Assembly (NCBI RefSeq): GCF_039654945.1
Contig: NW_027361891.1
Coordinates: forward strand, 6,324,001 to 6,388,000
Direction: 5' to 3'
Source of the DNA: Dendrobates tinctorius
Lineage: Eukaryota
Length of the DNA stretch: 64,000 nucleotides
In this document: in pieces, positions 6,338 to 58,782 of the stretch
Position numbering within the stretch: the first letter of the stretch is position 1
How the letters are laid out: every line of letters begins with the position of its first letter
Notes under the pieces: generated by a model
Databases searched by the model: none
What the model was told of the DNA's origin: nothing
Seen by the model: the letters and a program-made list of their open reading frames with translations, nothing else
Translations under genes and position numbers: made by a program

Positions 6338-7462
6338 ATGAAAGAGACCAGGCAGGGGTCGACGATATCTTCCAAAGATATCCGAGCCATAATTAGGGAG
6401 GAAATACAAGCCATCAACCGCGCCAGCACTCCCGCAGAGTCCAGTCATAAGAAACAGGTCATTGTTAGTTCAGAGTCAGAGGAAGAACAGGAGTTAAACT
6501 CAGGCTCCGCATCCACGTCCTCATCGTCATCCTCGGAGATGGAAGGACGCGCATGTTTTCCACTGGACAGCGTAGATAACCTTGTAAAAGCGGTTAGAAA
6601 TACTATGGGATGTGAAGAAGAAAGGGGAGCCCAAACCGCGCAGGACATTATGTTTGCGGGATTGGCAGAGAAAAAGAGATCATTTCCGGTGATACCGGCA
6701 ATTAAGGACCTCATCAAAAGAGAGTGGGAGAAACACGACCAGAGGGGTTTTCTCCCATCAGCTTCAAAACGGAAATACCCGTTCACTGATGAAGATCTAT
6801 TAAAATGGACTAAAGTACCAAAGGTGGATGCCGTCATATCCTCCACTTCCAAACAGACCTCGATCCCGGTCGAGGACGCAGGATTGTTAGCAGACCCATT
6901 AGACCGAAAGGCTGAATCTTCACTCAAAAGGTCCTGGGAATCCACCACCGGGGTATTCAAACCCGCAATAGCCAGCACATGTACTGCTAGATCAATGCTG
7001 GTATGGCTAGATCAATTAGACCAGCAGATTGAGCAAAGAGTGTCAAGGGAGAAACTGCGTGCAGCCATCCCGTTGATAAGAGGTGCAGCTGCCTTTATGG
7101 CAGACGCTTCAGCGGACACCCTAAGACTGGCAGCGAGGTCGGCAGCCCTGGTGAATAACGCCAGACGCGCGCTGTGGATAAAGAGCTGGAAAGGGGATGC
7201 ACAATCAAAATCCAAAATTAGTGCAACCCCATGCGAGGGTGAGTTCCTCTTTGGAAAAGCCTTAGACGAAATTCTCGCCAAGGCAAAAGAAAGGAAAAAG
7301 GCCTTCAGTGATTCTCCCATTCCGTTTTATAGGAAAACCTTTAAAAGACGGCCATTCGGGAGAAGAAGGCAATCGGACAGAACGAACAGATGGGCCACGA
7401 AAGACGAAAAGCAGAAGGGTACCATCTTCAGAGGGCCAACATATAGGAGAGATAAAAATTAA
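6338..7462 (+). CDS. DIRS1 ORF1 (gag-like, LAP2alpha C-terminal-like); reading frame open upstream to 6245 with a CxxC...CxxC motif
   Basis: 374-aa ORF in the DIRS ORF1 position with typical motifs (PKVD, DPLDRKAE, ARRALWIKSW, LFG). The upstream in-frame CALC...CKQC follows a splice acceptor at 6244. Confidence 0.85.
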   Translation: MKETRQGSTISSKDIRAIIREEIQAINRASTPAESSHKKQVIVSSESEEEQELNSGSASTSSSSSSEMEGRACFPLDSVDNLVKAVRNTMGCEEERGAQTAQDIMFAGLAEKKRSFPVIPAIKDLIKREWEKHDQRGFLPSASKRKYPFTDEDLLKWTKVPKVDAVISSTSKQTSIPVEDAGLLADPLDRKAESSLKRSWESTTGVFKPAIASTCTARSMLVWLDQLDQQIEQRVSREKLRAAIPLIRGAAAFMADASADTLRLAARSAALVNNARRALWIKSWKGDAQSKSKISATPCEGEFLFGKALDEILAKAKERKKAFSDSPIPFYRKTFKRRPFGRRRQSDRTNRWATKDEKQKGTIFRGPTYRRDKN

Positions 7463-9356
7463 GAGTTTAGACCCACCAGTTGGGGGTAGATTAAATTTTT
7501 TTTTTACCAAGTGGGAACAAATTACGTTAAACCCATGGATTTTGAACATAATCAAGGAAGGAATAAAGATTGAATTCCTTCGGATCCCTTATGAGTTCTT
7601 TGTTATAACTCGCCTTAATTCCTCACTTCAGCAAAAGGCTCTCGAAGACGAGATTCGAGTCCTACTAGCTAAAAAAGTTTTAGTTGACGTCCCTGAGGAA
7701 CAACAGGGTAGAGGCTTTTACTCTCCCCTGTTTTTGGTGCCTAAACCAGACGGTACGTTTAGAACCATTATTAATTTAAAGAAGCTAAATTCATTTATAA
7801 AAAATTATAATTTCAAAATGGAATCAATTAGATCCACTATAAAGCTTCTTTTCCCAAATTGCGTAATGGCAGGGATTGATTTAAAAGATGCTTATTATCA
7901 TCTCCCTATACACAACAGATTCCAGAAATACCTAAGAGTCGCAGTGGAAGTCGAGGGAAGGATTCGTCATTTCCAATACGCGGCAATGCCCTTCGGGCTT
8001 TCCACGGCACCAAGAATATTTACCAAGGTGATGGCAGAAGTGATGGCCTACCTTCGCCAAAAAGACACACTAATTGTACCATATCTAGACGACTTCCTAA
8101 TAATTGGGAATTCAGTCAAACAATGTACTGAACGCGTAACTGACGCAATCTCCTCTTTTCAGAGCCTTGGCTGGATTATCAATATCCAAAAGTCCAGACT
8201 CGATCCGCAATCTCTCCAGACATTTCTAGGATTTCAACTAGATTCCTTGACCCAGAGATGTCTACTACCTCAGGTAAAAATCACCCTCACAAAACAAAAA
8301 ATACAAGCAGCTATAGATAAACCACGTGTATCCTTGAGAGAAGCAATGTCACTATTAGGATCACTAAATTCTTGCACCCCGGCAGTCCGGTGGGCCCAGT
8401 ACCATGTCCGTACGCTACAACACCAGATCCTCCAAGAGGATAAGCGACATAGTGGTCATTTGCAGAGCAAAATAACCCTGTCACAAGAAGTCTTGACTTC
8501 CCTAGAGTGGTGGTTAGACGATAACCACTTATGTTCAGGAGTTCCATGGGTTATAGTTCCATCCTGTATCGTAACCACCGATGCCAGTCCCCAGGGCTGG
8601 GGAGCCCACATGGAGAATGGGTTTCGTCAGGGAAGGTGGAGTAAAGAGGAATGCGATTACTCATCTAATTTAAAAGAACTGACTGCAGTGTTCTATGCTT
8701 TATACAACTTCCTTCCGCAGCTCCAACAGAAGCATGTAAGGATCCTGTCTGACAACACCACCACAGTGGCATATATAAACAGACAAGGAGGAACTCGATC
8801 AGAGACTCTGATGTCTTCAGCGGCAAGAATTTTAAACTTAGCAGAAAACTATTTTTTGTCCCTCTCGGCCCTTCATATCAGAGGCGAGAGCAATCAAAAG
8901 GCAGACTTCCTAAGCCGACACACTCTACGACAAGGAGAGTGGTGCCTCAATCGGAAGGTCTTCAGGGACATAGTAGCCTCATGGGGACAACCCGAGGTGG
9001 ACCTTTTCGCCACAAAGGAGAACAGGCAGATAAAAACATTTGCCTCCCTATCTCCGTCAGATCACCCAGACATACTGGACGCCTTTCTAGCTCCATGGAA
9101 TTTCAACCTGGCGTATGCGTTCCCTCCATTGATCCTCCTACCTCAAGTAATTCGGAAGATCAGAGACGACAAAGCAAGAATAATCTTAATAGCACCGTTC
9201 TGGCCAAAAAGACCGTGGTTTTCGTGGCTGCAGATTATGTCAATAACAGATCCTTGGATCCTTCCGACTGCCAATCTACTCTCCCAAGGCCCCTTTTTCC
9301 ACCCTCAAGTGCTCAGCTTGCACTTGACGGCGTGGAATTTGAGAGGCAGTTATTGA
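7308..9356 (+). CDS. DIRS1 reverse transcriptase / RNase H / methyltransferase-like polyprotein
   Basis: DLKDAY, MPFGLSTAP, YLDD, RNase H TTDAS...SDNTT...ADFLSR, and C-terminal VDLFA...AYAFPP. Confidence 0.95.
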   Translation: MILPFRFIGKPLKDGHSGEEGNRTERTDGPRKTKSRRVPSSEGQHIGEIKIKSLDPPVGGRLNFFFTKWEQITLNPWILNIIKEGIKIEFLRIPYEFFVITRLNSSLQQKALEDEIRVLLAKKVLVDVPEEQQGRGFYSPLFLVPKPDGTFRTIINLKKLNSFIKNYNFKMESIRSTIKLLFPNCVMAGIDLKDAYYHLPIHNRFQKYLRVAVEVEGRIRHFQYAAMPFGLSTAPRIFTKVMAEVMAYLRQKDTLIVPYLDDFLIIGNSVKQCTERVTDAISSFQSLGWIINIQKSRLDPQSLQTFLGFQLDSLTQRCLLPQVKITLTKQKIQAAIDKPRVSLREAMSLLGSLNSCTPAVRWAQYHVRTLQHQILQEDKRHSGHLQSKITLSQEVLTSLEWWLDDNHLCSGVPWVIVPSCIVTTDASPQGWGAHMENGFRQGRWSKEECDYSSNLKELTAVFYALYNFLPQLQQKHVRILSDNTTTVAYINRQGGTRSETLMSSAARILNLAENYFLSLSALHIRGESNQKADFLSRHTLRQGEWCLNRKVFRDIVASWGQPEVDLFATKENRQIKTFASLSPSDHPDILDAFLAPWNFNLAYAFPPLILLPQVIRKIRDDKARIILIAPFWPKRPWFSWLQIMSITDPWILPTANLLSQGPFFHPQVLSLHLTAWNLRGSY

Positions 9357-10369
9357 GGACAAGAGGATTCTCGGAGTCCTTAATTACTACACTACTACAA
9401 AGTAGAAAACAGTCCACAACCCAAATTTACACTAGAATATGGAAAAAATTTCTTCAATTCCATACAGTACCTCATACAGCAGAAGTTCCGATAATCCCAA
9501 TCTTGGAATTTCTGCAGAAGGGGAAAGACTTAGGCTTAGCAGTAAATACACTAAGGGTACAAATATCAGCATTAGGAGCACTATATGGCCATAATATAGC
9601 AGGCAACAAGTGGATAACTCGTTTCATTACAGCATGTGAACGAATAGCTCCAATCCACATACCCTCCGTCCCTACATGGGATCTAAATCTGGTCTTAGAC
9701 GCCCTAACGGTAGACCCCTTTGAGCCGATCGACACAATACCCTTCAAATACTTAGCACTTAAAATGGCCCTCTTAGTATCACTGACCTCAGCTAGAAGAG
9801 TGGGTGATATTCAGGCCTTGTCAATAGATCCACCTTTTTTCCAAGAATACCAAGACAGATTGGTATTAAAACCAGACCCTGCCTACCTGCCAAAAGTGGC
9901 AACAAAATACCATAGATCTCAGGAGATACTCCTCCCAACCTTCTATAAAAATCCCTCTACTCCGGAAGAGCAGAAGTTCCATACTCTGGACGTCAAAAGA
10001 ACTGTCCTAAAATGTATTGAGAGGTCCAACAGTTGGAGGCAGAGTAGGGCCCTATTTGTTTCATTTCAGGGCTGTAAGAAGGGGTATGGAGTCACGAAGA
10101 GCACCATTTCCTGGTGGATCAGAGAGGCCATTCGTTTAGCCTACTCCGCAAAAAACGAAGATCCTCCAGGGAACATCAGGGCGCATTCCACCAGGGCAAT
10201 GGCAACCTCTTGGGCGGAAAAGGGAGATGTTCCGATTGAAACTATATGTAAGGCGGCAGTTTGGTCATCCCCTTCTACCTTCTATAACCACTACAGACTT
10301 GATCTTTCATCAACCTCTGACTTAAGCTTTGGCAGGACTATCCTTGGCACGGTGGTCCCACCCAGGTGA
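8939..10369 (+). CDS. DIRS1 tyrosine recombinase
   Basis: Catalytic motifs SARRVGD, AHSTR and FYNHY. Overlaps the RT ORF, as is usual in DIRS1. Confidence 0.93.
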   Translation: MVPQSEGLQGHSSLMGTTRGGPFRHKGEQADKNICLPISVRSPRHTGRLSSSMEFQPGVCVPSIDPPTSSNSEDQRRQSKNNLNSTVLAKKTVVFVAADYVNNRSLDPSDCQSTLPRPLFPPSSAQLALDGVEFERQLLRTRGFSESLITTLLQSRKQSTTQIYTRIWKKFLQFHTVPHTAEVPIIPILEFLQKGKDLGLAVNTLRVQISALGALYGHNIAGNKWITRFITACERIAPIHIPSVPTWDLNLVLDALTVDPFEPIDTIPFKYLALKMALLVSLTSARRVGDIQALSIDPPFFQEYQDRLVLKPDPAYLPKVATKYHRSQEILLPTFYKNPSTPEEQKFHTLDVKRTVLKCIERSNSWRQSRALFVSFQGCKKGYGVTKSTISWWIREAIRLAYSAKNEDPPGNIRAHSTRAMATSWAEKGDVPIETICKAAVWSSPSTFYNHYRLDLSSTSDLSFGRTILGTVVPPR

Positions 10370-15061: not shown

Positions 15062-16660
15062 ATTGGAGGCAATAAGCACACGATGAATGAACATCTGCAC
15101 ATTAGCAGCCATGGACAGATCCAGGTTCAGCAGCTGTTTGAAGACAATAGCAACAAAAGAACGGTCCTGACAACACAACCCAACGGGCTCACAGCTGTTA
15201 GTAAAACTGGATTGCCTGTTTCCGATAGACAACTCGAAAGCACACACCGTAGACAAGGAAGTTCTAGCTCTTTGAAATCCTCAGATGGGACAACCAAAGT
15301 AAAGTCCTCTTCATTAACCCCAGAACAAGCAATGAAGCAATACATGCAAAAACTGACCGCTTTTGAGCACCATGAAATTTTCAACTATCCTGAAATTTAT
15401 TTTTTGGGTCCAAATGCAAAGAAGCGTCAAGGTGTGATTGGTGGTTCAAATAATGGTGGTTACGATGATGTCCAGGGTTCGTATGTGCAAGTGCCACATG
15501 ATCATGTCGCTTACCGCTACGAGGTTCTTAAGGTAATTGGCAAAGGAAGCTTTGGGCAAGTTGTGAAGGCTTATGATCACAAACTCCATCAGCACGTGGC
15601 CTTAAAAATGGTAAGGAATGAGAAACGTTTCCATCGTCAAGCCGCAGAAGAAATACGGATCTTGGAGCATCTAAAGAAGCAGGATAAAGACAACAACATG
15701 AACGTCATCCACATGTTGGAGAACTTTACATTCCGCAATCATATCTGCATGACATTCGAGCTGCTGAGCATGAATCTCTATGAGCTCATAAAGAAAAACA
15801 AATTTCAAGGCTTCAGCCTGCCTTTAGTCCGCAAGTTTGCGCACTCCATCTTACAGTGCTTGGATGCTTTGCACAAAAATCGAATAATCCACTGTGACCT
15901 TAAACCGGAAAATATTTTATTGAAACAACAGGGTAGAAGTGGCATCAAAGTGATCGATTTTGGCTCCAGCTGTTATGAGCATCAGCGTGTGTACACATAC
16001 ATACAGTCCCGCTTTTATCGAGCTCCAGAGGTAATACTTGGCGGTCGCTATGGCATGCCTATTGACATGTGGAGCTTGGGCTGCATTCTAGCAGAATTGT
16101 TGACTGGTTATCCACTTTTACCTGGTGAAGATGAAGGAGATCAGTTGGCATGTATGATTGAATTACTGGGGATGCCATCTCAAAAATTGCTTGATTCTTC
16201 AAAACGAGGCAAGAATTTTGTCAGCTCCAAAGGTTACCCTCGTTATTGCACTGTCACAACTCTGCCAGATGGGTCTGTGGTTCTTAACGGCAGCCGTTCT
16301 CGAAGAGGAAAACTACGAGGCCCTCCTGGGAGTAGGGACTGGGTAACTGCTTTGAAAGGCTGTGATGATCCCTTGTTTCTTGATTTTCTAGCACAGTGTT
16401 TAGAATGGGATCCTGCTTTGCGCATGACGCCCAGCCAGGCGTTACGACACCATTGGCTACGTAGACGCTTGCCAAAGCCTCCAACTGGAGAAAAGGCCTC
16501 TTCCAAAAGAATAACTGAAAGCTCTGGTGCTATAACATCCATTTCTAAGTTACCTCCCACATCAGGCTCAGCTGCAAAACTAAGAACTAATTTGGCCCAA
16601 ATGACCGATGCCAATGGAAATATTCAGCAGAGGACTGTGTTGCCAAAGCTTGTTAGCTGA
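15062..16660 (+). CDS. DYRK2: DYRK2 terminal coding exon: dual-specificity tyrosine-phosphorylation-regulated kinase 2 (NAPA, DH box, kinase domain)
   Basis: TTTCAG acceptor, then [13 protein letters not shown]. Motifs [36 protein letters not shown]. The C-terminus [18 protein letters not shown] matches DYRK2. Confidence 0.97.
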
Positions 16661-37808: not shown

Positions 37809-40800
37809 ATGGCGGATGAACAGCGACTGCTGCAGCACATCCGGCAGCTGCAGGGCAGGTTGGCGGCTCTCGAGCGTTCAGCCTCAGCTGCGGATGTTAC
37901 TGCAGTCGCTGTTCAGGCAGCCACAGAGGCTGTTTCCCGTGTGACCACTGCCATCCCTGCCCCGACTTTGTCCCACCTCCCGCTGCCCGAAAAGTTCTCG
38001 GGTGATAGTGCAGCTTGTAGGGGTTTCGTAACCAGTGCTCTATACAGCTGGAGCTGCTGGCTGCCCGATTCCCCTCCGAGCGGGCTAAGGTGGGATTTAT
38101 TATTTCCCTTCTGTCGGGCAGGGCTTTGGAGTGGGCCACACCGCTGTGGGAGCGTGGTGATCATGTGGTGCAGGGTGCTTTGCGGTTCTTAGACACTCTG
38201 AAACAGGTCTTCCTGGGACCACGAGTCACCCATGACACCGCGCTCCGGCTGCTGGCACTGTCACAGGGCTCGTCCATGGTCAGTCACTTCGCCATCCAGT
38301 TCCGGACGCTGGCCTCAGAATTAGAGTGGCCAGATAAGGTCCTCATTCCAGCGTTCTGGAGAGGTTTGGCTGGCCATGTGAGGGACGCTCTGGCCACCAG
38401 AGAGATTCCCGCTACACTGGAGGAGCTTATCTCTGTCTCCACCCGAATCGATCTTCGCTTCATCGAGCGAAGGTTGGAGCGGGACCAGTGTAGGCAGAGG
38501 TTTAGGTTGGCATCTTGTTTTTCTAGACCTCTGGAATCCCCCGATCGGGCGTCCGAGCGTCAGGGGGCTTCCCGTGAGGGATCTAGACTCCGGTCCGCTC
38601 GAGCTCCTGTGAGCTGTCATATTTGTAGGCAGGCCAGTCACCTCGCCAACCGGTGCCCACAGCAGCAGGGAGAACGCTCGTGCCTAGTGGCCGTAGGAGG
38701 CGGCGCACTAAAGCCAGCGACGTTTTCCTCCAAGCTGTCCTTTAAGGGGACTCTTGGGTTTAATTCTTCCACTCTGGAGGTGGAGGTTTGCGTGGATTCC
38801 GGGGCGGAGGGCAATTTTATGTCGTCAGCCTTCGCCCAACGGCACGCTATACCTCTGGTTATGATGTCTACACCAGTCACCGTCAGAGTGGTAAACGGCA
38901 CCACTCTACCCTCGCAGATAACTCACCAGACCGTCCCCTTGGTACTCTCTGTGGCTCCGTCTCATCAGGAGACGATATCCCTCCTCGTCATGCCCGAGGG
39001 TATTGACCAGGTACTTCTAGGGGTTCCCTGGCTGCGGTATCACTCCCCCCATATAGAGTGGTCCTCAGGGAGGATTATTGGGTGGAGTAAGTCATGTGAG
39101 GGTAGATGTCTGAGGGAGTGCGTTCAGGTTGCCTCCACCGAGGTTCCCGCTGATCTCTCCTCGCTCCCCAAACACTATCGGCAGTATGCAGACGTGTTCT
39201 CCAAAAAGGCGGCGGAGACCCTTCCACCACATCGCCCCTATGACTGTCCTATTGACCTCTTGCCTGGTGCTGAGCCTCCCCGGGGTCGAGTCTATCCCCT
39301 ATCTCTCCCGGAGACTGAGGTCATGTCTCAGTACATCAGGGAGAATCTGGCAAGAGGATTCATTAGGAAGTCAGTGTCACCAGCGGGGGCGGGATTCTTC
39401 TTCGTCCAGAAGAAGAGTGGGGAACTACGTCCTTGCATTGATTACAGGGGTCTTAACGCCATCACCGTTAAGAATAAATATCCACTGCCCCTGATATCAG
39501 AACTGTTTGATAGGCTACGAGGAGCGAGGGTATTTTCCAAACTTGATCTGCGGGGGCTTACAACCTGATTCGCATCCGTGATGGAGATGAATGGAAGACG
39601 GCATTTAACACCAGGGACGGGCACTATGAATACCTGGTGATGCCCTTTGGGCTCTGTAATGCCCCGGCCGTCTTCCAGGACTTTGTGAACGATATCTTCC
39701 GGGATATGCTTACCACCTCGGTTGTAGTCTATCTGGATGATATCCTCATCTACTCTCCAGATATTGACTCCCACCGGAGAGAAGTTTGCAAAGTTTTTGA
39801 TCGCCTGCGGGCGAACTCCCTCTATGCCAAGTTGGAGAAGTGTGTGTTTGAGCAGGAGTCCTTGCCTTTCCTGGGCTATATCATCTCGGCCCAGGGATTG
39901 GCCATGGATCCTGCCAAGCTACAGGCGGTGATGGATTGGCAGGAACCTCATTCTCTCAAAGCGGTGCAGTGCTTTATGGGGTTCATAAATTATTATCGCC
40001 AATTCATCCCCCACTTCTCGACTTTGGTAGCACCCTTGGTAGCCCTCACCAAGAAGGGTGCAAATCCCAAGTTGTGGTCGGAACTGGTCTCCAAGGCCTT
40101 CTCCACCATTAAGTCCCATTTCGCTAGCGCTCCCATTCTACATCGCCCCGATGTAGACAAGCCCTTCATTCTGGAAGTGGATGCCTCTTCCGTCGGTGCT
40201 GGAGCAGTCCTGTTCCAGAGGGACACGCAAGGTCGGAAGCATCCATGCTTCTTTTTCTCCAAGACCTTCACACCGGTGGAGAGGAATTATGCCATCGGGG
40301 ACAGGGAGTTGCTAGCGATGAAGTTGGCCTTCTCGGAGTGGAGACACCTCCTGGAGGGGGCTCGTCACCCTTTCCAGGTGTTCACCGACCACAAAAACTT
40401 GGTGTATTTACAAACAGCCCAGCGGCTAAACTCTCACCAGGCTAGATGGTCCTTGTTCTTTTCCCGGTTCCATTTCACCCTCCACTTTCTCTCCGGGGAG
40501 AAGAACGTCCAGGCCGATGCTCTCTCCCGCTCCGTGGTGTCATCGGAGGAAGAGGAGGAGGAGCCTCGGCTGATCGTCCCATCCGAAAGCCTGAGGACTG
40601 TGGCTCCGGTTGCCCTTGAGTCTGTGCCTCCGGGCAAGACATTTGTCCCTGCCCGTCTGCGACCGGAGGTCCTCTCTTGGGCTCACTCGTCCAGAGTGGG
40701 TGGACATTTTGGGACAAAACGGACCTCCGACCTTTTGGCGAGGACGTACTGGTGGCCACATATGGCCCGTGACGTCAAGGACTATATTGAGGCATGCGTC

Positions 40801-42306
40801 TCTTGCGCCCGGAATAGGTCCTCTCGGCAGCGGCCCGCTGGGCTTCTTTTCCCTCTGCCGATAGCAGACAGGCCCTGGGAGATGGTCGGTATGGACTTTG
40901 TGGTGGGGCTACCAAAGTCCAGTGGCAGCACGGTCATTTGGGTTGTCACCGACCATTTCTCTAAGATGGTGCACCTGGTACCTCTCTCCCGGTTACCATC
41001 AGCGCAGGGCCTGGCAGTCTTGTTCATCAAGCACGTTTTCCGCCTGCACGGCATGCCGGACAAGATTGTCTGTGACCGAGGTCCTCAGTTTGTGTCCCGG
41101 TTCTGGAGAGAGCTCTGTTCTCTACTCAGCATTGAGCTGAATCTCTCCTCGGCCTATCATCCCGAGACGAATGGGTTGGTAGAGAGAGCCAACCAGACCT
41201 TGATAACATATCTTCGACATTTTGTCTCAGCCAGGCAGGACGACTGGGCATCCTTGCTGCCGTGGGCAGAGTTCGCGTTGAACAATGCTGTGGCCGACTC
41301 TACCGGTCAAACCCCATTCCTCCTAAATTACGGTCAGCATCCACGCGTTCCTGTGCCCATGCCCGTGTCTTCCACCGACTCCAGGGTGGCAGACTGGGCG
41401 GTGGAGGCACGTGACATTTGGGATCGCACCCAGGATGCTATCCGAGCTTCCAAGGAGAGAATGAGGATCTCCGCTGACGCACACCGGCGTCCTGCTACAA
41501 GCTTCTCACCTGGCGACATGGTATGGCTCTCTACCCGAAACATTAAACTGCGGGTTGAGTCGCCCAAGTTCGTGCCACGATACATTGGCCCATTCAAGGT
41601 CCTTGAGCGACTTAGCTCGGTGGTCTACCGCCTGGCTCTTCCCCCACATTTGGCCATCTCGGACGTGTTCCATGTGTCCCTCCTCAAACCAGTTCACATG
41701 GCCCGGTTTTCCGAGCCATCTGCCGGGTCATCAGACTTATCGTCTGACGAGTTTGAGGTTAATGCCATCGTGGGGCGCAAGTTTGTCCGTGGCAAAAAAT
41801 TTTATTTGGTGGACTGGAAGGGTCATGGTCCCGAGGCTCGGACCTGGGAGCCGGTGGAAAACATTCACGCACCGCTCCTGATCGCGGCTTTTGAGCGCAG
41901 TGAGGCTCAGAGGGGGGGTAATGTTAGGCATCGGATTCCTGGCACTGCACAGCGGGAATCCAGAGCCAGACATCCTGTGGTCTCCCATTCCTCTCCGACC
42001 GCTCGGACTCCTGCTCAGCAATCTCGGCTGGCCAGGCATCTCCCTCTGATTCGTTCTGTGAGCCTGGATGTTGCTGCCACCTCTGGGGCAGCAATGGTGA
42101 CGCAACCTGCTTTGCAGGGAACTGCTCCCGAGGCTAAGTCCTCATGCCGTGCTACTAGGCATGCCCACAACTTGTCCTCTCAGTGGAGAGCAGGGGTCAC
42201 ATGTGCAGGTCCTATGTCGGATCTGATTGGTCCTTCCTATAGTACTGGAAGGTCCCGGAAGCGCATGGCTATAAAAAGCCCGTATGCCGGCTCGGCCATG
42301 CGCTAG
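37809..42306 (+). pseudogene. Gypsy gag-pol with two 1-nt frameshifts (~38033, ~39555)
   Basis: PEKFSGD gag, [14 protein letters not shown] knuckle, DSGA protease, YLDD RT, DAS RNase H, HHCC and DDE integrase, GPF motif, chromodomain (EFEVNAIV...YLVDWKG...TWEP). Confidence 0.9.
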
Positions 42307-47875: not shown

Positions 47876-48259
47876 CATCCATACCTCCCAGCGGGACAGT
47901 CCCGATTTTGAGAGAGAGTCTGCCCCTCTGCCCTGGCCGGGAGCTTTTTCTGCGGACACAGGAGTTCCCGGCAGAGCCCCGAGGAGCACTTTAAAATTCG
48001 CACATGACGTTCCACCGGAAGTGACGTGCTAGAAGCTGACCGGAAATGAGGTAATTTCGGGAGGAGATTGTGACCGAACCATGGAGGCACTTCAGGGAAT
48101 GCTTCAGATCCATCACCGTGTTCTCCGACAGTGCGGACAGCGGGATTGCCTTGGACTCGGGGATGCCGGCCATGTGAGCAGATCGTAATATGTCCTGCAT
48201 CAGGAGGCTCAGGTGGGCACTACAATGGGAGCCGGGCTGCTATAGTATCTTTATAGAAT

Positions 48260-49397
48260 CTTTCTTTCTCTCTGTGTTCTTTCTCTCTCTAATCTTTCTT
48301 TTTCTCTTTCTGTTCTTTCTTTCCTCTCTTTCTCTCTCTTCTTTCTTTCTCTCTGTTCTTTCTTTCTTTCCCCTCCTCCTTTATCTCTCTGTTCTTTCTT
48401 TCCCCTCTTTCTTTCTCTAATATTTCTTTTTCTCTCTGCTTTTTCTTTCTCTCTCTGTTCTTTGTTTCTCTCTGTTCTTCCTTTCTCTCGCTCTGTTCTT
48501 TCTTTCCTCTCTTTCTCTCTCTGTTCTTTTTCTCTCTGTTCTCTTTCTTTCCCATCTTTCTTTCTCTTTCTCTGTTCTTTCTTTCCCCTCTTTCTCTCTC
48601 CCTCTCTGTTCTTTCTTTCTCCTCTTTCTTTTTTTCTCTCTCTCTTTGTTCTTTTTCTTTTTTCTTTCTCTCTGTTCTTCCTTTCTTTCCCCTCTTTCTT
48701 TCTCTCTCTCTGTTCTTTCTTTCCCCTCTTTCTCTGTTCTTACTTTCGCTCTGTTCTTTTTTTCTCTTTCTTTCCCCTCTTTCTTTCTCTCTCTAATCTT
48801 TCTTTCTCTCTCTGTGTTCTTTCTTTATTTCTCTTTCTTTCTCTCTGTTCCTTCTTTCCCCTCTTTCTTTCTCTGTTCTTTCTTTAACCTCTTTCTTTCT
48901 CTCTCCCTCTTTGTTCTTTCTTTCCCCTCTTTCTTTTTTTTTCTCTCTCTCTGTTGTTTTTATCTGTCCCCTCTTTTTCTCTCTCTGTTCTTTCTTTCTT
49001 TCTTTCCCCTTTGTTNNNNNNNNNNNNNNNNNNNNNNNNNNNNNNNNNNNNNNNNNNNNNNNNNNNNNNNNNNNNNNNNNNNNNNNNNNNNNNNNNNNNN
49101 NNNNNNNNNNNNNNNNNNNNNNNNNNNNNNNNNNNNNNNNNNNNNNNNNNCCCTCTTTCTTTTTTCTCTCTCGCTGTTCTTTTTTTCTATCCCCTCTTTC
49201 TTTCTCTCTCTGTTCTTTTTTTCTGTCCCTTTCTTTCTCTCTGTTCTTTCTTTCTCTCTTTCTTTCTTTTTTTCTTCTTTCTTTCTCTCTCTGTTCTTTC
49301 TTTCCCCTTTCTCTCTCTCTCTCTTCTTTCTCTCTCTGTTTTCTTTTCTCTCTCTCAGTTTTCTTTTTTCACTCTCTCTGTTCTTTTTTTCTTTTCC
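48260..49397. repeat. CT-rich low-complexity tract spanning an assembly gap (N 49016-49150)
   Basis: Nearly pure polypyrimidine sequence with a run of Ns. Confidence 0.95.
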
Positions 49398-52086
49398 TTA
49401 GTACCAATCAGTGTGCCCACAGTACCAGTAGAATAAGAGGGGTAGGAAACTAGGTGGCACTGGTCACATTGAGCCTTTCATACTTTTTACTGGTGTATAA
49501 TCATATGCCCTGAGCACCCCCATAAAGTGGGCCAGCCCCAGACAACAGGGTACAAACAAATCACTATTACTATCAGTCCAAGTGGACAATTATATACATA
49601 AAGTTAATGATGTCCCTGTGCCAAGCAGTGCAGAGGATCAGAATACACTGAGGAGACCAGAGCAGCGGGGTATGGTGAGAAGAATTATATGGGTCCCATT
49701 ATGCTGTGTGAGGTAATATATGGTGCCCATTATACTGTATGCAGTAATATATGGGGCCCATAATACTGTATGGAGCATTATGTGGGGATAGGGGATGACT
49801 TTCTGTTTGTTGTGGATCTGACCGCTGGGACCCCCATGATCCTGGGAAACATAGCTTTGTAGAGCACCATGTAAATGGAGCGGTGGTCAATAATACGTAC
49901 TGTGGTGCCATTCACATGTGGCTCTTCAAGTAACTCCTTTAAGAGAGTGATGAGGGGACGACAAAGTATAGCAAACATTCACTGATTGGGGCTGATGAGT
50001 GTTATAGTTTGTGGGCTGGTGGGATTTGTGTGCCAGGGCTACATTTTTGTCCCAGTGCAGCCCTGTGCCAGGCCTATTATTGCCATTAATGATCCTTGTT
50101 CTGGATACTTCTGTGTTGTTGTATGTGCGAGTGACATCCTTGTGTTTGGACACCTTTCTTTTCTATTTATCTAAATCAAAATGTCCACTATTGTACTCAG
50201 TTTTACAATATAGATATAAAAATTTACTTTGTGTGTGTGTGTGGGGGGGGGGGCGTCATTTTGCTGTTCGTCTCAGGCAGCAGAGAGGCTAGGTTCACCC
50301 CTGCGGACACATATGCTGCCTGACACAGCCTAACATAGCATTCAGGAAGGTTGGATAAATTATGCCAAGTCGCCGATCTCTGGAATAATTGGACCGTAGA
50401 CCATTAATAATACCTGTGGTTTGCATTAATTTCTGTGAGATCTTTGCTGCTTTTTGCATCGACGACTAACTCCTGTAATGTAACAGTCATGCAAAGTAAA
50501 ATCATGATATCAGAGTATATTGGCTACATTACGTTTCTTTCTTCCGTCTTAGGGCTCATTCAGACGTTTAGTGATTTTTTTTCTTGTACGTAAAAGCACG
50601 GATAACTGTTTATCAGTATTTTTTATCCAATATTCATCATTTGGTCTGGGTCAGTGTTTTTCACCTATGGAGAAATAAATTGCAAAACTTCTCCTGACTA
50701 ATAGCGGACAGCGCATGGACTGCACACTGATGCCGAAAGTCTAATGACTGTGATTTTCACCGGCCCGCAGACTTGTATGGGTAATTTTGATCCAATGGTT
50801 CGGAGCGAAGACGGCCATGTTGCCAGATTTTTGCAAGTGATCTGTCGGACAAATCAGACATCCGGAGAAAGTGAGAGAGCAGTGACAGCTTTCAGTTCCT
50901 CCGGATGCCAATTACGTCTGAAAGAGAGGAGAATAAAGCCAGCACTGATTGTCCGCAGGGAATGTCATGCGAGCTTCAGGAGAGCCAGTGCCGACACTGA
51001 TAGAACAGCGCCGACAATGGCGGATTCTTCAGTACATATGCTATTATTTTACTGGGGGAAAACAGGGATTGAGGTGCTGTCTGAGTAGTGGACAACACCT
51101 TTAAAGCTGCTTAATTTTCTTTTAATGCAGCCGTACATATTTTATTCCATGATGGGCATTACTGCTGTTCAATCTGGCCATAACTGTTCAATGACCAAAT
51201 TGATTCCCGACATCAACTAGATAAAAACCTGCAGCAAGGCAGACACAAAAAAAGATGAGTGAACCAGACCAAAGTAAAAACCGTAATATATATACATATA
51301 ATTAAAGTGCAAATGTAGATAAATGCACAACTTAAAGGAAACTTGTCTCCAAAAAAAAATGCTATTAACCTTCAGATATGGGGAGAATCCACACACAGAT
51401 TGATAGCATTTTTTCTGGTGACAAGTTCCCTTTAAGTTGTGCATTTATCTACATTTGCACGTTACTAACCTGCCCAGCGCCTGCACTAAGCCGAACGCTG
51501 TGGGGAGAAAATTAACTTAATTCTCCCTGGCAGCATTCGGTTTCAGTCACAGGGTGGCTCCAGCGCTGGTTCAGTCACCGCTCTGATTATACAGAGCCGC
51601 AGCTGTAACGGATATTGGTTCTGCATTGGTGCCGGACGTCAGGACTGCCACTAGGAATTTCGGGGCCCCATACTGGCAAAATTTTCGGGACCCCTTGAGA
51701 CTCCGCCCAGGCTCCACCCAGCCCCGCCTCCACCCCGTGAACTGTCCTCAGTCCCACCGCTCTCTCTTGGAAAAGCTCCACTTCTCACCTACACACATTA
51801 ACAGTTCCCATCACCAGATCACACATATAGCTGGCAGCTTTTGCTTTGGCCAAAAGATTTTTTTAAGCCGCCACCATAACAGGGTAGACACTCTTGGCCA
51901 GGCCCTACTCTACTGTAGAAATAGATTAGAAACATATGTGACATGCACAAGTGTGAACAAGTTGGTCAGACAATGCTCACACCACCCAATGGCTGAAACA
52001 CAAGAAAACACAAAATGACAAATTTGCAAAAAATACTCTGCAGTAAAAAGCATGACAGTAATCAGCAAGTGCTGTATAACGAATAC

Positions 52087-52167
52087 AGGGTATTTAGTCG
52101 ATACGTTTTTTGCAAAAAATGTATACCAAGCCGCTTCACCATGTCAGGGTAACCCCTCACGAAGCAG
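52087..52167 (-). ncRNA. Candidate HDV-like ribozyme, inverted copy (L3 mutated to CTGACAT)
   Basis: Reverse complement of the motif at 52373. Confidence 0.55.
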
Positions 52168-52372
52168 TCCCTATCTAATGTATTTAAAACCTGAACATGT
52201 GAACAGTGTCTAAATGAACAGGATACAGACAGGCGCCTCCTAGCATATGGGCTTGTGGTGTAAGACAGCTCATTTATGTGCATGTCACACAGGAGAGGGG
52301 TGGGATCTCCCAAACCATGCTGAGCATGCTGAGCATACCCCATGTTCAGGTTTTAAATACATTAGATAGGGA

Positions 52373-52454
52373 CTGCTTCGTGAAGGGTTACCGTGACGTG
52401 GTGAAGCGGCTTGGTATACATTTTTTGAAAAAAAACGTATCGACTAAATACCCT
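52373..52454 (+). ncRNA. Candidate HDV-like ribozyme, copy 1
   Basis: P1 CTGCTTC/GAAGCGG, P2 AGGGT/ACCCT, P3 ACC/GGT, L3 GTGACGT, P4 hairpin, J4/2 CTAA. Confidence 0.65.
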
Positions 52455-52787
52455 GTATTCATTATACAGCACTTGCTGATTACTGTCATGCTTTTTACTG
52501 CAGAGTATTTTTTGCAAATTTGTCTTTTTGTGTTTTCTTGTGTTTCAGTCATTGGGTGGTGTGAGCATTGTCTGACCGACTTGTTCACACTTGTGCATGT
52601 CACATATGTTTCTAATCCGTTTTTTCCTTGCTCAGCATGGTTTGGGAGACCCCACCCCTCTCCTGTGTGACATGCACATAAATGAGCTGTCTTACACCAC
52701 AAGCCCATATGCTAGGAGGCGCCTGTCTGTATCCTGTTCATTTAGACACTGTTCACATGTTCAGGTTTTAAATACATTAGATAGGGA

Positions 52788-52868
52788 CTGCTTCGTGAAG
52801 GGTTACCGTGACGTGGTGAAGCGGCTTGGTATACATTTTTTGCAAAAAACGTATCAACTAAATACCCT
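52788..52868 (+). ncRNA. Candidate HDV-like ribozyme, copy 2
   Basis: Same pairings as copy 1. Confidence 0.65.
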
Positions 52869-53201
52869 GTATTCGTTATACAGCACTTGCTGATTACTGT
52901 CATGCTTTTTACTGCAGAGTATTTTTTGCAAATTTGTCTTTTTGTGTTTTCTTGTGTTTCAGTCATTGGGTGGTGTGAGCATTGTCTGACCGACTTGTTC
53001 ACACTTGTGCATGTCACATATGTTTCTAATCCGTTTTTTCCTTGCTCAGCATGGTTTGGGAGACCCCACCCCTCTCCTGTGTGACATGCACATAAATGAG
53101 CTGTCTTACACCACAAGCCCATATGCTAGGAGGCGCCTGTCTGTATCCTGTTCATTTAGACACTGTTCACATGTTCAGGTTTTAAATACATTAGATAGGG
53201 A

Positions 53202-53282
53202 CTGCTTCGTGAAGGGTTACCGTGACGTGGTGAAGCGGCTTGGTATACATTTTTTGCAAAAAACGTATCAACTAAATACCCT
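53202..53282 (+). ncRNA. Candidate HDV-like ribozyme, copy 3
   Basis: Same pairings as copy 1. Confidence 0.65.
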
Positions 53283-53963
53283 GTATTCGTTATACAGCAC
53301 TTGCTGATTACTGTCATGCTTTTTACTGCAGAGTATTTTTTGCAAATTTGTCATTTTGTGTTTTCTTGTGTTCCTACTCTGCTGTAACCTATTAAATATT
53401 TGTTAAAATCTACAATACAATTTAGGTATATTTTTATTTATTTTTCAATTTTTAAAATGACCAATAATATCACATACAAGGAACAAATACCGCTACACCA
53501 TGTCCAGACCACATATTACCACCACATTGTGACCTATAATACCACATAAAAATTAAATACATCACTGCAGTAATACGATCCCTTAAGTAACCCCTATGGT
53601 AATAATATCCCCCATCCTGACCCCCATTGGTCTCATTCTTGGCTTCAGCCATATGTTCTCCCATCCCACCCTCATGAGTATCCATTCTGCCCCATATGAT
53701 CTCCCCATCCTGCCCCATCTGTCTCCATCGTATCCATCCTGCCCCATGATCCTGTGCAATCTGTCTCCAACCCTGCCCCATGTGTCTCCAGTCATGCCCC
53801 GTATCTCCATTCTGCCCCGTGTCTCCAATGATGCCCCATGTCTCACATTCTGCCCCATGTCTCACATTCTGCCCCCTCCTGTCTTACTGTCACATTCTGC
53901 CTCTTCCTTTGTCTGTGTCACATTCTGCCCCATGTCCTGCATTCTGCCCCAGCGTCCAGCATG

Positions 53964-54003: not shown

Positions 54004-56532
54004 GCTGTGTGCATGGTATATTTGGACTTATAAGGGTAAGGACTCCCCCTCTTGATAGCGCTATGGCACTTTATTGATGTGGAATGAATTACTATGTTTA
54101 CAGTCAGTTACCTATATTGAATGTATCTGAATTAACTGATTGAGTTCTTCTCTGTATAAGTGGCCATATATATTGGGACACTTTTGTGTAATATTTATCC
54201 ATTTTCTCTTTGGGGTTTGATATACCCAGTCCTAATATTAATTATTTATACCACCCACTTTGTCGCTGTTCGTGTCTTTCGCAATTTGAACAATTTTGGT
54301 CCATAGTATAATTTTTATTATATGTATGATTAATAAAATTGGAATATTTTATGATATTTTAAACAGGCTTTTGTACTCTGTTCTTCGTGATATGCTTTAT
54401 GCTTTTGAGCATTCCTGTTGCCCTTTATAAGGTGGCACTATAATATTTGTTCTTTGGTTGTTTTAAGGGAAAGAGATAGCGTTGCACGTTGTGAAACCTG
54501 ATGTTGATGCTCGAAAGAATACAAATATGCTGTGTACCAGAATCAGTAAAGTTACCAGTTTGAAAGTTGAATTGGACTGCGGCTCATTTTGTAAAAAACC
54601 AGACCGCGAAGACCTCCAGAAACCGACAGAGTACCCTGTCTGCGCTGGGGAAGAAGCCACAGGTATGCAGTACGTGTTTGTGATGGGAGGGCAGGGCGCG
54701 CTAACGCAAATGCTATCCGCCATGACTACCACCCTGTACCTCCCTCACACAGGAGGGTGGCGATCATAAGAAGATGGATTGCATTTTATTGCAATGTAGC
54801 GGCAACCCAAAAAATACGTAATTCTGGGGTTTTTAATTTTTTCCTCGTTACGCAGTTTAGCGATTGGGTTAATTTTTTATATTGATTGGGCGATTTTGAA
54901 CATGGCGATATCAAATTTGTGTATGTTTGATTTTTTTTTTATTGCTCTATTTTGAATGGGGCGAAAGGAGGGTGACTTCAACTTTTATATTTTTTAATTT
55001 TTTTTAATATTTATAAAAACATTTTTTTTTACTTTCGCCATGCTTCAATAGTCTCCATGGAAGACTAGAAGCTTCAATACTTTGATTGCCTATGCTATAC
55101 ACAGGCAATGATCAGATCGCCTGTGTGTAGCAGAAATGCTCATTTGCTGAGTGCCAACCACCAGGCCGCACTCATAACAATCTGGCAATGACAACCATAG
55201 AGGTCTGCTGCAGACCTCTGGTTGTCATACCGACCTATTGGTGACTCGAGATCATGTAACAAGGTCACAGATGGACGAGATTAATGATGTGCTTCCTATA
55301 AGAACGAGTTAAATGCTGAGTTAACTAGTTAACAGCCGCGGGTGGTTCACGATTCCACCCATGGCTGTTGCGGGCACATCTCAGCTGTATAGATCAGCTG
55401 TCATGTCCTTGGAAAGTTGTGGGCTCAGCGCCAGAGCCCGCACCAAACAGGCGGAGTCCGACATGTGCGTCCTACTAGGCCACATGTCACAAAGGGGTTA
55501 ATAACTAAAAAACATGAGTTGTAACTAAACACTCATGCACGAAAAATAGAGACCTACATGTATTAAACATTCAAGCAATATAATAAAATCCAGTGGTCGC
55601 CTACCAAACACCTGTATATGTGGCGCCCCTGACGGTTCAGTCGCCACAGAGGTCCTGCACCACAGCTAGAGGTGTGGTACTCCGCTCTCGGGTAAGAAGG
55701 GGGCACTACCCAGAACCCACACACTTACATCTAACAATGTACCTCTCAGGGCCCGGGAGGAGATAGGTAGAGGGTGTGGGTGGAGAAAGTAGTAGGGGAG
55801 GAGTCAGAGAGAATTGTCATGGAAATAGGAGTCAGTTGGAGGGAAGGAGTTCAGTTGGTGCTGTGGACTGAAGGAGAGAGGAGCACGTCCCTTGACTAGC
55901 ACAGCGTGAGAGAAAGGAGGGGAGAAGGAAGGGGTCCTAGGGGCACGAGAAGTGAAGAATCCACCCGTGGTGCCCGAGTCTGCGCCGACTGTAGTTGGGT
56001 GGAGGGACCGGGCCGCAGTGGGGGACAGGATCCGGGGCTGCTGGCTCGGGACGCTGTGTGTTGGGGTGCGGGGGGGAGAGGAAAGAGCCGGCGCAGTGGG
56101 ACAGCCGAGGAGGGAGCATCTGAAGGGGATTCTGGCACAGTGTGACCCAGGTTACTTGAGAGCTGGCTGGACCACCAACCCGGAGGACGCAGCACCCCGG
56201 CTGGGGAATGTGGCCGGAGAACTGCGAGTAAAAATGTGGAAACTGCACCCCCTTGTGTCCTCAGATTTATTTGCTTCGTCACCTGCCTTGCACCACAGCT
56301 ACCATCATTATCTCTAACACCTATAACTGCGCTGGGGCCTAGCTCTGCCCATGGAGAGCTGTAACAACTCTGCTGCATCACCAACAGCCCCAGCGGTCTC
56401 TTTTGCAGTGTCGGCTATCACCTTCATTGCCGAACACCATGGGTGGCGTCACGAATATATTTCCCCATAAACTACTACCCTCATCTTTTATTTACATTGC
56501 ACGCCCAGGGTCACGGACCGGGTCACTGCTGC

Positions 56533-57084
56533 AATTTATTTTTAACTTTTTTATTTCAGGATATTTGTTTTTTGTTTTTGGTTTTCTCTTTGTAAAGGTC
56601 ATGTGTTCATATGCAATTACATTTTGCATACACATTAATTTACTTTTTCAGCTCAGACCCAGTTTCTCATTTAGTTCAATGTGCATTCAGTGCATATAAG
56701 GGTGTGACCACCCTGTTTCTGATTTGGAAATCCATCTTCTCTGGCCTATACTATTACTAGTGGTCAGTCCCTCTGTCCTTGTTCACATTTACGTCACTTG
56801 ACAAGTGGAAAGGTTTTAAATATAAGAGTTAGGACTGTCCCAAAAGGGTTGCCGTGACGTGGCGGGATGGCTTGTGCATTATTTTGATCAAAATTATGAT
56901 TACTAAATACCCTTATTATTATTTCTACCTTCATGCAATTTTTGCAATTTATTTTTAACTTTTTTATTTCAGGATATTTTTTGTTTGTTTTTGGTTTTCT
57001 CTGTGTAAAGGTCATGTGTTTATATGCATTTACATTTTGCATACACATTAATTTACTTTTTCAGCTCAGACTCAGCTTCTCATT
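56533..57084 (+). mobile_element. Non-coding retroposed element, 1.3 copies of a 413-nt unit, with one HDV-like fold
   Basis: Terminal direct repeat 56531-56672 / 56944-57085 (period 413). Flanking ~57-bp duplication of LTR sequence at 56476-56532 / 57085-57141. Confidence 0.8.
56835..56914 (+). ncRNA. Candidate HDV-like ribozyme, second family
   Basis: P1 CTGTCCC/GGGATGG, P2 AAGGGT/ACCCTT, P3 GCC/GGC, identical L3 GTGACGT, different P4 hairpin, J4/2 CTAA. Confidence 0.65.
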
Positions 57085-58782
57085 TACCCCCATCTTTTAT
57101 TTACATTGCACGCCCAGGGTCATGGAACGGGTCACTGCTGCCGTGACATATTCCCCGAAGGACTGACCGGCCCGGTACCGAGTACTCCCGGCCCTAGGGG
57201 GCAATGCATATACGTCTGACATTGGCCACCAGACATGGTTTGTCTGTACCTGCATGTTATGTTCCATTCACAACCCACAATATAAATAGGTTACTTGCTT
57301 CAATTTGTTTCAGTAAATAACCAAACAGTTGTCTTAGATTTCTGGGGAAGTAAACATATAAAAAACCATCATATGTTATCAGCATGCTCGTTAGTTGTTT
57401 GGGAAGAAAGCCATCTGTTAGCACATTTGGTAGGTAAAAGACGGATGCTGAAGGTGGGAAACATTGTGAATTCTCAACAATAAGTGAATGCTGAAACTTT
57501 GTATGGCACCTGTTTCAAACTGCAGGACACTGATTTAGTCAAAAGGGTAACGAAAGGCTCCCAGACCTCAATGTGAAATGTAATATGGCCTCCATTTTCC
57601 ACGTGCCACTTATTAGGGTCTGTAGACCTGCACTGTATGTTGGCAATATGCCAGGAAACATGCATTATATATACCTCTGGTGAAAGCATCTGAAGAATGC
57701 CACTCGCTCTGCTTACATTTCCTCTATTCATTTTTGTGAGATACTTTTGTATAGAATAGCACTATGCTATCTTATACAGATAGAAAAAAAAGATAGATAT
57801 AGCAATGCATACCTCCCTGATGTGACAAAAAGGACACACTTCTATACCTGAGAGTTGTGAGCTTTTATATGTACATGCTTAATACATACGTATATAGTAT
57901 AATCATCCACCGGACACTTTAGTGATCATTGGTAGTTAACAAATTAATGCGGCATATATGAGGCTGTTGAGTTAGGGTATGTGCCCACGATCAGTAATCG
58001 CTGTGGGTTGGGCGCTGTGTACTTGTGCAGCGTCCAACACACAGCAGCCAGATGTTACAGCATAGTGGATGGGATTTCAAGAAATCCTGTGTCCAAAATG
58101 CGTCCGCAGACGCCTGCGTTTCACCCGCGGAGACGGACATGCGGCGCATCTCTCCAGACTGCAGCATGTCAACTTCTTTTGTAGAGACGCTAGTCTCCGC
58201 AAGAGAAATTTCACCAATAGAATGTAATGGATGTGGTAAATCCACACGGTTCAATGAACATATGCGGATTCACCTGCAGGCAGTAGATGGCAGCGCTTTC
58301 ATGTTCTGGGACAGATCTTACCGGAGTGCACTATTTGATACTATTGTACTTTCTATGCTTAGTTGTTAAGCATATAAGTGATGTCTGACTATTTTTCTAT
58401 TAATGATATGTGACCCTGGTATATTTGTTTGTCTTTGCATTTTGTCACTTTACCTTGTTACCTTTTTATACTAATGATACTCTAATAAAATTCAAATTTA
58501 CTTTTACTATATTTATCTGATACTCCTCATTCTCCTATTGCAGTGTAGACTATCAGCCTGGTGAAGGGCCGCAGGCATGTCCCGTAACAATAAATGGGAT
58601 ACTGTTGTACTGTTGTCAGGACTAGAGTTGAGCGAAACGGGTCGAAAAAATTCAAAAGTCGCCGACTTTTGGCAAAGTCGGGTTTCATGAAACGAAACCC
58701 GACCCTAGGATGAGGTCGGCCACGAGGTCGGCGACTTACGCGCCAAAGTTGCGTTTCAAAAGTTTGTTTTGCGCTCTTTTTC

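Follow-up and report, generated by a model that had tools for sequence, protein, structure and literature searches.

The genomic and antigenomic HDV ribozymes fold as a nested double pseudoknot in which the catalytic cytosine opens J4/2 and is followed by N-A-A, and in which a G occupies position 25 of L3. A repeated stretch in the genome of the frog Dendrobates tinctorius is predicted to share these features. HDV, however, has a G1.U37 pair at the cleavage site, two P1.1 C-G pairs with the cytosines in L3 and an L3 of 8 nt, whereas the frog fold has C1-G36, G22-C37 and an L3 of 7 nt. The comparative descriptor of HDV-like ribozymes comprises G1-Y35, two P1.1 C-G pairs with cytosines in L3, U...CG in L3 and C-R-R-A in J4/2 (PMC6326823). 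A preliminary description of the DNA studied here had reported a departure from the canonical HDV-like core, and against this descriptor it holds on every count. The U at the 20/23 position of HDV is invariant, being present in 508/508 natural isolates, and only five of the 16 possible combinations of positions 20 and 25 are active in the antigenomic ribozyme: U/G, C/A (232-fold slower), U/U, G/G (470-fold slower) and U/A, with C/A the only active double mutant (PMC3386971).

The CPEB3 ribozyme, whose numbering is used throughout, carries U20, U21, C22, A23, G25, U26, G1.U36, G37, U38 and C57 (PMC4836649). The frog fold resembles it in its 7-bp P1, the 3-bp P3 at 17-19/27-29 and the 7-nt L3 with U21, A23, C24, G25 and U26, and also in the absence of J3/1, a putative two-position P1.1 with U21.U38, a J4/2 of C-N-A-A and a P4 hairpin. 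The two differ at the cleavage site, where G1.U36 of CPEB3 is C1-G36 in the frog; in P1.1, where C22-G37 appears as the swapped pair G22-C37; and at position 20, an invariant U in CPEB3 but G, U or C in the frog repeat. CPEB3 is moreover a single conserved intron site, whereas the frog fold belongs to a high-copy mobile repeat. In theta ribozymes, found in gut phages, an example reads ACC/U/CC/ACGU/GGU/P1'/GG/.../CUAA (PMC10879173, supplement 3). The theta P3 (ACC/GGU), L3 (N-NN-ACGU) and J4/2 (CUAA) equal those of frog family 1 letter for letter, so that CUAA in J4/2 is nothing unusual. Theta ribozymes differ in having U20, a P1.1 of CC/GG, G1-C36, a very short P4 and tRNA neighbours, and the string TGACGT is absent from the theta-ribozyme supplement (PMC10879173).

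The cleavage-site pair of the frog fold has a precedent in L1TcRz, an active ribozyme in which cleavage before C1 was mapped experimentally, C1 is paired to G37 and a pyrimidine follows P1' (PMC3185411). L1TcRz shares with the frog fold the C1-G pair, a non-canonical P1.1 (proposed for the frog) and CUAA within J4/2, and it sits at the 5' end of the retroelements L1Tc and NARTc, autonomous and non-autonomous. The P1 orientation and P1.1 composition of its clade have been noted as different (PMC4035085). L1TcRz, however, has a P1.1 of a single pair, with U after P1' where the frog has C, and functions as an internal promoter in addition. The elements that carry it have poly(A) ends and lack the tandem arrangement of the frog units. 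Variation in P1.1 is compatible with activity elsewhere: fast ribozymes contain U:A plus C:U or U:U (PMC13635239), and the second P1.1 pair of CPEB3 tolerates both G:C and C:G (PMC9901934).

The host element looks like the non-LTR retrozymes and Penelope-like elements of animals, which are non-coding tandem units of a few hundred bases at very high copy number (PMC7229834; 10.64898/2026.07.22.740005). Penelope-type retrozyme insertions span more than one unit, have an inverted 5' part and make target duplications of variable length, as does the frog element. These retrozymes carry type I hammerheads, whereas the frog element carries an HDV-type fold instead. A text search of 8.4 million papers for an HDV-type retrozyme, or for HDV-like ribozymes of frogs, found no description of such a system; the core string was likewise not found in searchable paper text, a search that sequences printed solely in figures escape. 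Judged from its sequence, the stretch is probably an HDV-like (delta-type) double-pseudoknot ribozyme module of a reversed-core subtype, carried once in each unit of about 414 nt of a tandem retroelement.

Architecture of the fold and of its host elements

The window, by which we mean the whole 64,000-nt stretch analysed, contains five copies of an 81-nt stretch, one in each unit of two repeat families (Table 1). An HDV-like double pseudoknot can be drawn for all five. In both families L3 comprises 7 nt and J3/1 is absent, and family 2 matches CPEB3 numbering exactly through position 38. In that numbering L3 reads G20 (polymorphic G/U/C), U21, G22 (the proposed P1.1 partner), A23, C24, G25 and U26.

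Table 1. Features of the frog repeat in the window and loci with the same core in other genomes (positions in the window unless a locus is named; helix positions are those of family 1 copy a).
Feature	Position	Strand	Details
Host element, family 1	51918..53372	.	inverted unit 51918-52340 plus 2.5 direct 414-bp units 52341-53372
Host element, family 2	56533..57084	+	about 1.3 units of 413 bp
HDV-like fold, family 1 copy a	52373..52454	+	predicted cut A52372 / C52373; reads C UGCUUC / GUGA / AGGGU / U / ACC / GUGACGU / GGU / GAAGCGG / CU... / P4 / CUAAAU / ACCCU
HDV-like fold, family 1 copy b	52788..52868	+	covariance model match, 113.9 bits
HDV-like fold, family 1 copy c	53202..53282	+	covariance model match
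HDV-like fold, family 1 inverted copy	52087..52167	-	L3 CUGACAU (C20/A25); covariance model match
HDV-like fold, family 2 copy	56835..56913	+	P1, P3 and P4 differ from family 1 (rows below), same core
P1 (1-7 with 30-36), 5' strand CUGCUUC	52373..52379	+	with 52403-52409 GAAGCGG: C-G, U.G, G-C, C-G, U-A, U-A, C-G; family 2 CUGUCCC/GGGAUGG
J1/2			family 1 GUGA; family 2 AA
P2 (predicted), 5' strand AGGGU	52384..52388	+	with ACCCU 52450-52454, 5 bp, pseudoknot; family 2 the same, one extra A-U pair possible
P2-P3 spacer			U in both families
P3 ACC / L3 GUGACGU / P3' GGU	52390..52402	+	P3 = 52390-92 with 52400-02, 3 bp; family 2 P3 GCC/GGC, L3 GUGACGU
C, U after P1'	52410..52411	+	proposed P1.1: C with L3 G52395 (G-C), U with U52394 (U.U); C37 U38 in both families
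P4 hairpin, AU-rich	52416..52440	+	4 bp, A.C mismatch, 5 bp; family 2 also AU-rich with one internal mismatch, different sequence
J4/2 CUAAAU	52444..52449	+	C52444 = predicted catalytic cytosine, then N-A-A; identical in both families
Phage locus	L105:190-330	minus	crAss-like phage contig IMGVR_UViG_3300016467_000502; about 100 nt 3' of major capsid gene
Paired loci of one contig	L019:3700-3800	minus	contig IMGVR_UViG_650627024_000001, 617,453 bp
	L030:6494-6640	plus	same contig
Viral locus	L055 (= L079)		viral contig; minimal form without P4
Metagenome locus	L004:543-709	minus	contig OGCC01002035.1; P1 CCCCCUC/GGGGGGG, 7-bp P2 CGGGAUC/GAUCCCG

The family 1 insertion is 1,455 bp long, with one unit of about 414 bp inverted and 2.5 direct, and is bounded by a 14-bp target duplication at 51904-51917 / 53373-53386 with the sequence CCTACTCT(A/G)CTGTA. 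Against these 14 bp, the family 2 insertion has an unusually long direct duplication of 57 bp (56476-56532 / 57085-57141, 54/57 identical). The host element thus displays several traits of a retrozyme: non-coding tandem units, a motif with predicted cleavage in each unit, target duplication and high copy number. An autonomous partner element was not found within the window.

Two further segments are conserved between the families upstream of the fold. One of them, AGGTTTTAAATA, spans positions -25 to -14 relative to the predicted cut; it occurs at 52348-52359, 52763-52774, 53177-53188 and 56811-56822 (+) within surroundings that differ, and could be a TATA-like piece of a promoter or a 3'-end signal of the unit RNA. 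AGGGA, immediately 5' of the predicted cut, is conserved as well.

The surroundings are rich in transposable elements and vertebrate-like, with Ty3/gypsy genes, an intronless kinase ORF and a zf-BED ORF. A Ty3/gypsy-type retrotransposon at 38090-42306 encodes gag, protease, RT, RNase H, integrase and a chromodomain; a further RT/RNase H ORF lies at 6338-10369, where the preceding ORF has a LAP2alpha-like domain. The uninterrupted 525-aa ORF at 15083-16660 contains a complete protein kinase domain (Pkinase, E=2e-57) and may be a retrocopy or a single-exon gene. At 51303-51464, 450 bp left of the family 1 insertion, there is a MITE-like inverted repeat of 56 nt, 93% complementary, with its arms 50 nt apart. 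The range 48259-49394 is occupied by long microsatellite arrays that are degenerate, rich in TCTT/TCTC and strongly skewed between the strands.

Covariation and the selected helices

The fold by itself is not evidence, because a permissive HDV descriptor of our own matches about 117 places in the window, folding energies are like those of shuffles and Rfam gives no match. Single copies and P4 alone, a weak and AU-rich hairpin, folded no better than shuffled sequences (z +0.3 to +0.5). Rfam searches of the window sequence returned no ribozyme family, whether at the gathering score or, for ranges of 1.4 kb and 96 nt, at E<=10, and the matches were just noise from miRNA models; the Rfam CPEB3 model did not match the 96 nt at E<=10, and the Rfam hammerhead models matched neither at the gathering score nor at E<=10. 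The permissive descriptor was dropped as evidence, its matches including those in a GC-rich 59-bp minisatellite. This tandem array (228-2148, 65% GC, 59-bp period), in which long ORFs are open in three frames, produces repeated false matches.

The case for RNA structure comes from comparing the families. When family 1 is its sole input, a covariance model finds family 2 with E=2e-13 and aligns it helix for helix, and across the copies 99% of the cells of 25 pairs are paired. Between the families seven pairs change on both sides (three in P1, one in P3 and three in P4), against 1.7+-1.1 in shuffles, none of which reached this number (0/500), and 0-1 when partners are slid; the alignment was guided by the covariance model and so leans toward structure, and that of family 2 is unambiguous by eye too. 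A MAFFT alignment of the copies was dropped after a gap was misplaced in P1 of family 2. P1 comprises 7 bp in all copies, one of its pairs changing on one side in addition to those counted above, and P3 exchanges A-U for G-C. The unpaired core, consisting of L3, CUUG, ACUAAAUACCCU and AAGGGUU, is 100% identical between the families, and the remaining unit is 57% identical. P1, P3 and P4 are a selected RNA structure with HDV topology, and the data support selection on the fold in both families.

These changes bear on the idea that the fold is a chance drawing on a stretch that is conserved for its function as DNA, for instance as a promoter, a transposase site or an integrase site. The ease with which the permissive descriptor finds matches would suit such an account, as would the TATA-like block 14-25 nt upstream. 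Conservation of DNA would, however, not account for seven compensatory pair changes among which the outermost P4 pair is the sole one disrupted, for G.U pairs that are strand-specific, or for the same architecture in unrelated genomes, and we regard a chance fold as highly improbable.

The pseudoknot is a different matter. P2 is 100% paired in the window copies, with a single A-U to G.U change and zero two-sided changes, and the P1.1 partners (G22/U21 in L3, C37/U38) are constant and therefore show zero covariation. Because P2 and P1.1 never covary in the window, the pseudoknot part in the frog copies depends on the constancy of these positions and on a parallel with the lineages outside the frog described below; on this basis we infer both P2 and P1.1. 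The same lack of two-sided covariation in P2 leaves room for a nested three-way junction, in which upstream AUAGGG pairs with CCCUGU as an outer stem enclosing the P1/P3 hairpin and the P4 hairpin, with neither a P2 pseudoknot nor an HDV-type active site. Folding family 1 together with 28 upstream bases does in fact give such a junction as the nested structure of lowest energy. Its energy is nevertheless no better than that of shuffles, its outer stem, 6 bp long in family 1, is reduced by uncompensated changes to 3 bp in family 2, and the minimum-energy nested fold of family 2 itself uses P2. These observations, together with the distribution of P2 in other genomes, make the junction very unlikely.

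Core positions among window and genomic copies

The preliminary description had given the letters of the fold at 52373-52454 correctly, the sole exception being L3 of the inverted copy. Its predicted C-G pair at +1 is present in 5/5 window copies, so that no copy has the G1.U or G1-Y of the comparative descriptor, and the inverted P1.1 partner, an L3 G opposite the C that follows P1', is likewise the same in all five. Two further statements stand in part. The L3 sequence GUGACGU, assigned to both families, is found in four copies and is replaced by CUGACAU in the inverted one; the retained CUAA of J4/2 occurs in 5/5 copies, and the retained CG of L3 in 4/5, CG having become CA in the inverted copy. 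This copy differs from the direct ones at eight internal positions, two of them in L3, where G is replaced by C at position 20 and by A at position 25. The 20/25 pair thus shows G20 in 4/5 and G25 in 4/5 window copies, the remaining copy having C20/A25.

Variation in the wider repeat population was drawn from assembled contigs of four public runs (X1, X6, X15 and X16, of which X15 and X16 are presumed RNA runs), about 3,800 contigs in total, placed on one unit. The repeat is very abundant, with 2,986 contigs in one DNA run (organism A) and 745 in that of a second organism. Within the fold, the variants listed comprise P1 changes that keep the pairing and changes in J1/2, at L3 position 20 and in P4. 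In P1, 52793 T>C (30% of depth) and its partner 52819 A>G (42%) convert U-A to C-G or U.G, 52822 C>T converts G-C to G.U, and 52823 G>A converts U.G to U-A. Every position of J1/2 is variable, and P4 accepts a T insertion and an A insertion at similar frequency on opposite strands of the hairpin. The outermost A-U pair of P2 shows A>G, giving G.U. None of the listed best-supported variants falls in L3 21-26, P3, the P2 strands GGGU/ACCCU, C37 or J4/2. Free variation of the core positions among copies, which the preliminary description had named as evidence against its proposal, is accordingly not listed in these contigs, except that position 20 does vary. At 52870, 45 contigs have loose ends, and the 3' end of the fold is often the exact point at which other subfamilies cease to be similar. 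A pile-up of ends was reported in none of the runs. Contig joints that go back 367-395 nt are compatible with both circles and tandem DNA.

At position 20 the change from G to U accounts for 11% (X1), 24% (X6), 85% (X15) and 31% (X16) of contig depth. The earlier view that G in place of U20 is a trait of the families therefore has to be abandoned, given this range of 11-85% U, the C20 of the inverted copy and a U in 4/5 lineages outside the frog. Position 20 alternates between G and U, with C opposite A25 in a single copy, and we conclude that it does not define the core. The states observed in the frog, G/G, C/A (inverted copy) and U/G (contigs), all lie within the five active combinations of antigenomic HDV; the cases are few, and by analogy with HDV the match is suggestive. 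The same analogy also has a less favourable side, since G/G is about 470-fold slower in antigenomic HDV, and the G20 copies at the window locus may be slow or dead. G20 is also present in family 2 and in the phage example (L105).

The unusual features of the fold are thereby confined to C1-G36, G22-C37 and position 20. P3, A23-U26 and CUAA are ordinary, and the active-site neighbourhood is otherwise like that of CPEB3 and theta, with N-U-N-A-C-G-U in L3, NCC/GGN in P3, no J3/1 and C-N-A-A in J4/2. In strand order, the canonical arrangement Y36-G37 becomes G36-C37 in the reversed core, so that the two pairs flanking the scissile phosphate are flipped together. We speculate that this joint reversal may reflect stacking, or the avoidance of a slip in the register of P1.

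An RNA conserved in HDV-like shape but with cleavage lost, or never present, would also show much of this pattern, and might serve the reverse transcriptase that copies the repeat as a structure for recognition or priming. It would fit G20 in 4/5 window copies, with the cost of about 470-fold in antigenomic HDV (PMC3386971), the conservation of AGGTTTTAAATA and of AGGGA before the cut, neither of which an HDV-type ribozyme needs, and a predicted cut site that coincides with none of the insertion ends in the window. The invariant positions, however, are those that catalysis requires, namely the catalytic C, the next A-A, G25, C24 and the P1.1 partners. The core furthermore recurs in a phage and in a giant-virus contig, where there is no reverse transcription of a repeat to serve, and the crAss-like phage locus has G20 too. 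Loss of cleavage is thus an unlikely reading of the conserved core, and a ribozyme remains the one that we prefer.

The reversed core in other lineages

Public contigs were scanned with the pattern CCKTGACGTGG-N8-CTTG, to which CTAAAT was added for the metagenome scan, and matches were filtered for a full 7-bp P1 and a third P3 pair. Nine of the 125 pattern matches passed the filter (7 distinct sequences), with about 1.3 expected by chance, and convincing folds were found in five lineages (Table 1). The metagenome matches L001-L003 and L005/L006, the viral matches L032/L065 and L086 were rejected as chance, P1 being absent or P2 weak and distant. Rfam gave no match to the outside loci at E<=0.1.

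The five lineages share a 7-bp P1 and a 1-nt spacer between P2 and P3, and each has a P2 of 5-7 bp that differs from the others, a recurrence that the nested junction considered above would not predict. J4/2 is C-N-A-A followed by one or two further nucleotides. Because the pattern fixed L3 and CUUG, the independent observations from these lineages are P1, P2, the 1/36 pair and J4/2. The pair was left free by the pattern and is nevertheless C1-G36 in all five (chance 1/4 each), or in 7/7 when both frog families are included.

The crAss-like phage locus has the core ACC-GUGACGU-GGU, followed by C-U after P1', and is in this respect identical to frog family 1, G20 included. The two loci L019 and L030 share an upstream CAATGTTGT box, the L3 sequence UUGACGU and a long AU-rich P4 region, while P1 and P2 both covary between them; their contig appears giant-virus-like on account of its FNIP-repeat genes. 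In the metagenome locus L004, P2' could also be read after CUAAAU, as in the frog; this reading was dropped and the 7-bp P2 preferred. A serine-rich ORF of 165 aa follows about 60 nt downstream of the fold; it had no Pfam match and no atlas match, and the fold may represent the 5' end of an unknown retroelement.

The comparison supports the view that the reversed core (C1-G36, G22-C37 and U21.U38) is a recurrent natural subtype rather than a decayed canonical ribozyme, as far as sequence can indicate. The suggestion of a variant class rather than decay is thereby supported with respect to L3, P1.1 and C1-G36, the same core being present in all five outside lineages, and is corrected with respect to position 20, which is not a family trait.

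If the frog repeat is a ribozyme of this subtype, multimeric transcripts would cut themselves between A-1 and C+1, with C52444 acting as the general acid and a metal ion bound near the 20/25 pair. Cleavage would release RNAs of unit length that carry 5'-OH and 2',3'-cyclic phosphate ends, and a helper element might reverse-transcribe these RNAs directly or after their ligation into templates. More tentatively, and as a possibility that we would not yet favour, ribozymes with C1-G36 and G22-C37 may form a distinct and uncurated HDV-like sub-class that is active in vertebrates as well as in crAss-like phages and a giant virus, and that drives an HDV-type retrozyme in the frog through unit-length, possibly circular RNAs to thousands of copies.

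The reversed subtype escapes both descriptors and Rfam: the former demand G1-Y, P1.1 pairs of the C-G type and an L3 with U...CG (PMC6326823), and the latter derives its models from members of this kind. Estimates of how widely delta-type ribozymes are spread may as a result be too low. To the known examples the subtype adds thousands of copies in the frog genome as well as those of phages and a giant virus. They amount to natural mutants in which the cleavage-site pair and P1.1 are swapped, and natural G/G, C/A and U/G versions of the metal-binding 20/25 pair would allow a direct test of what the G.U wobbles contribute. If our reading of the frog element is correct, the retrozyme life style would not be confined to the hammerhead.
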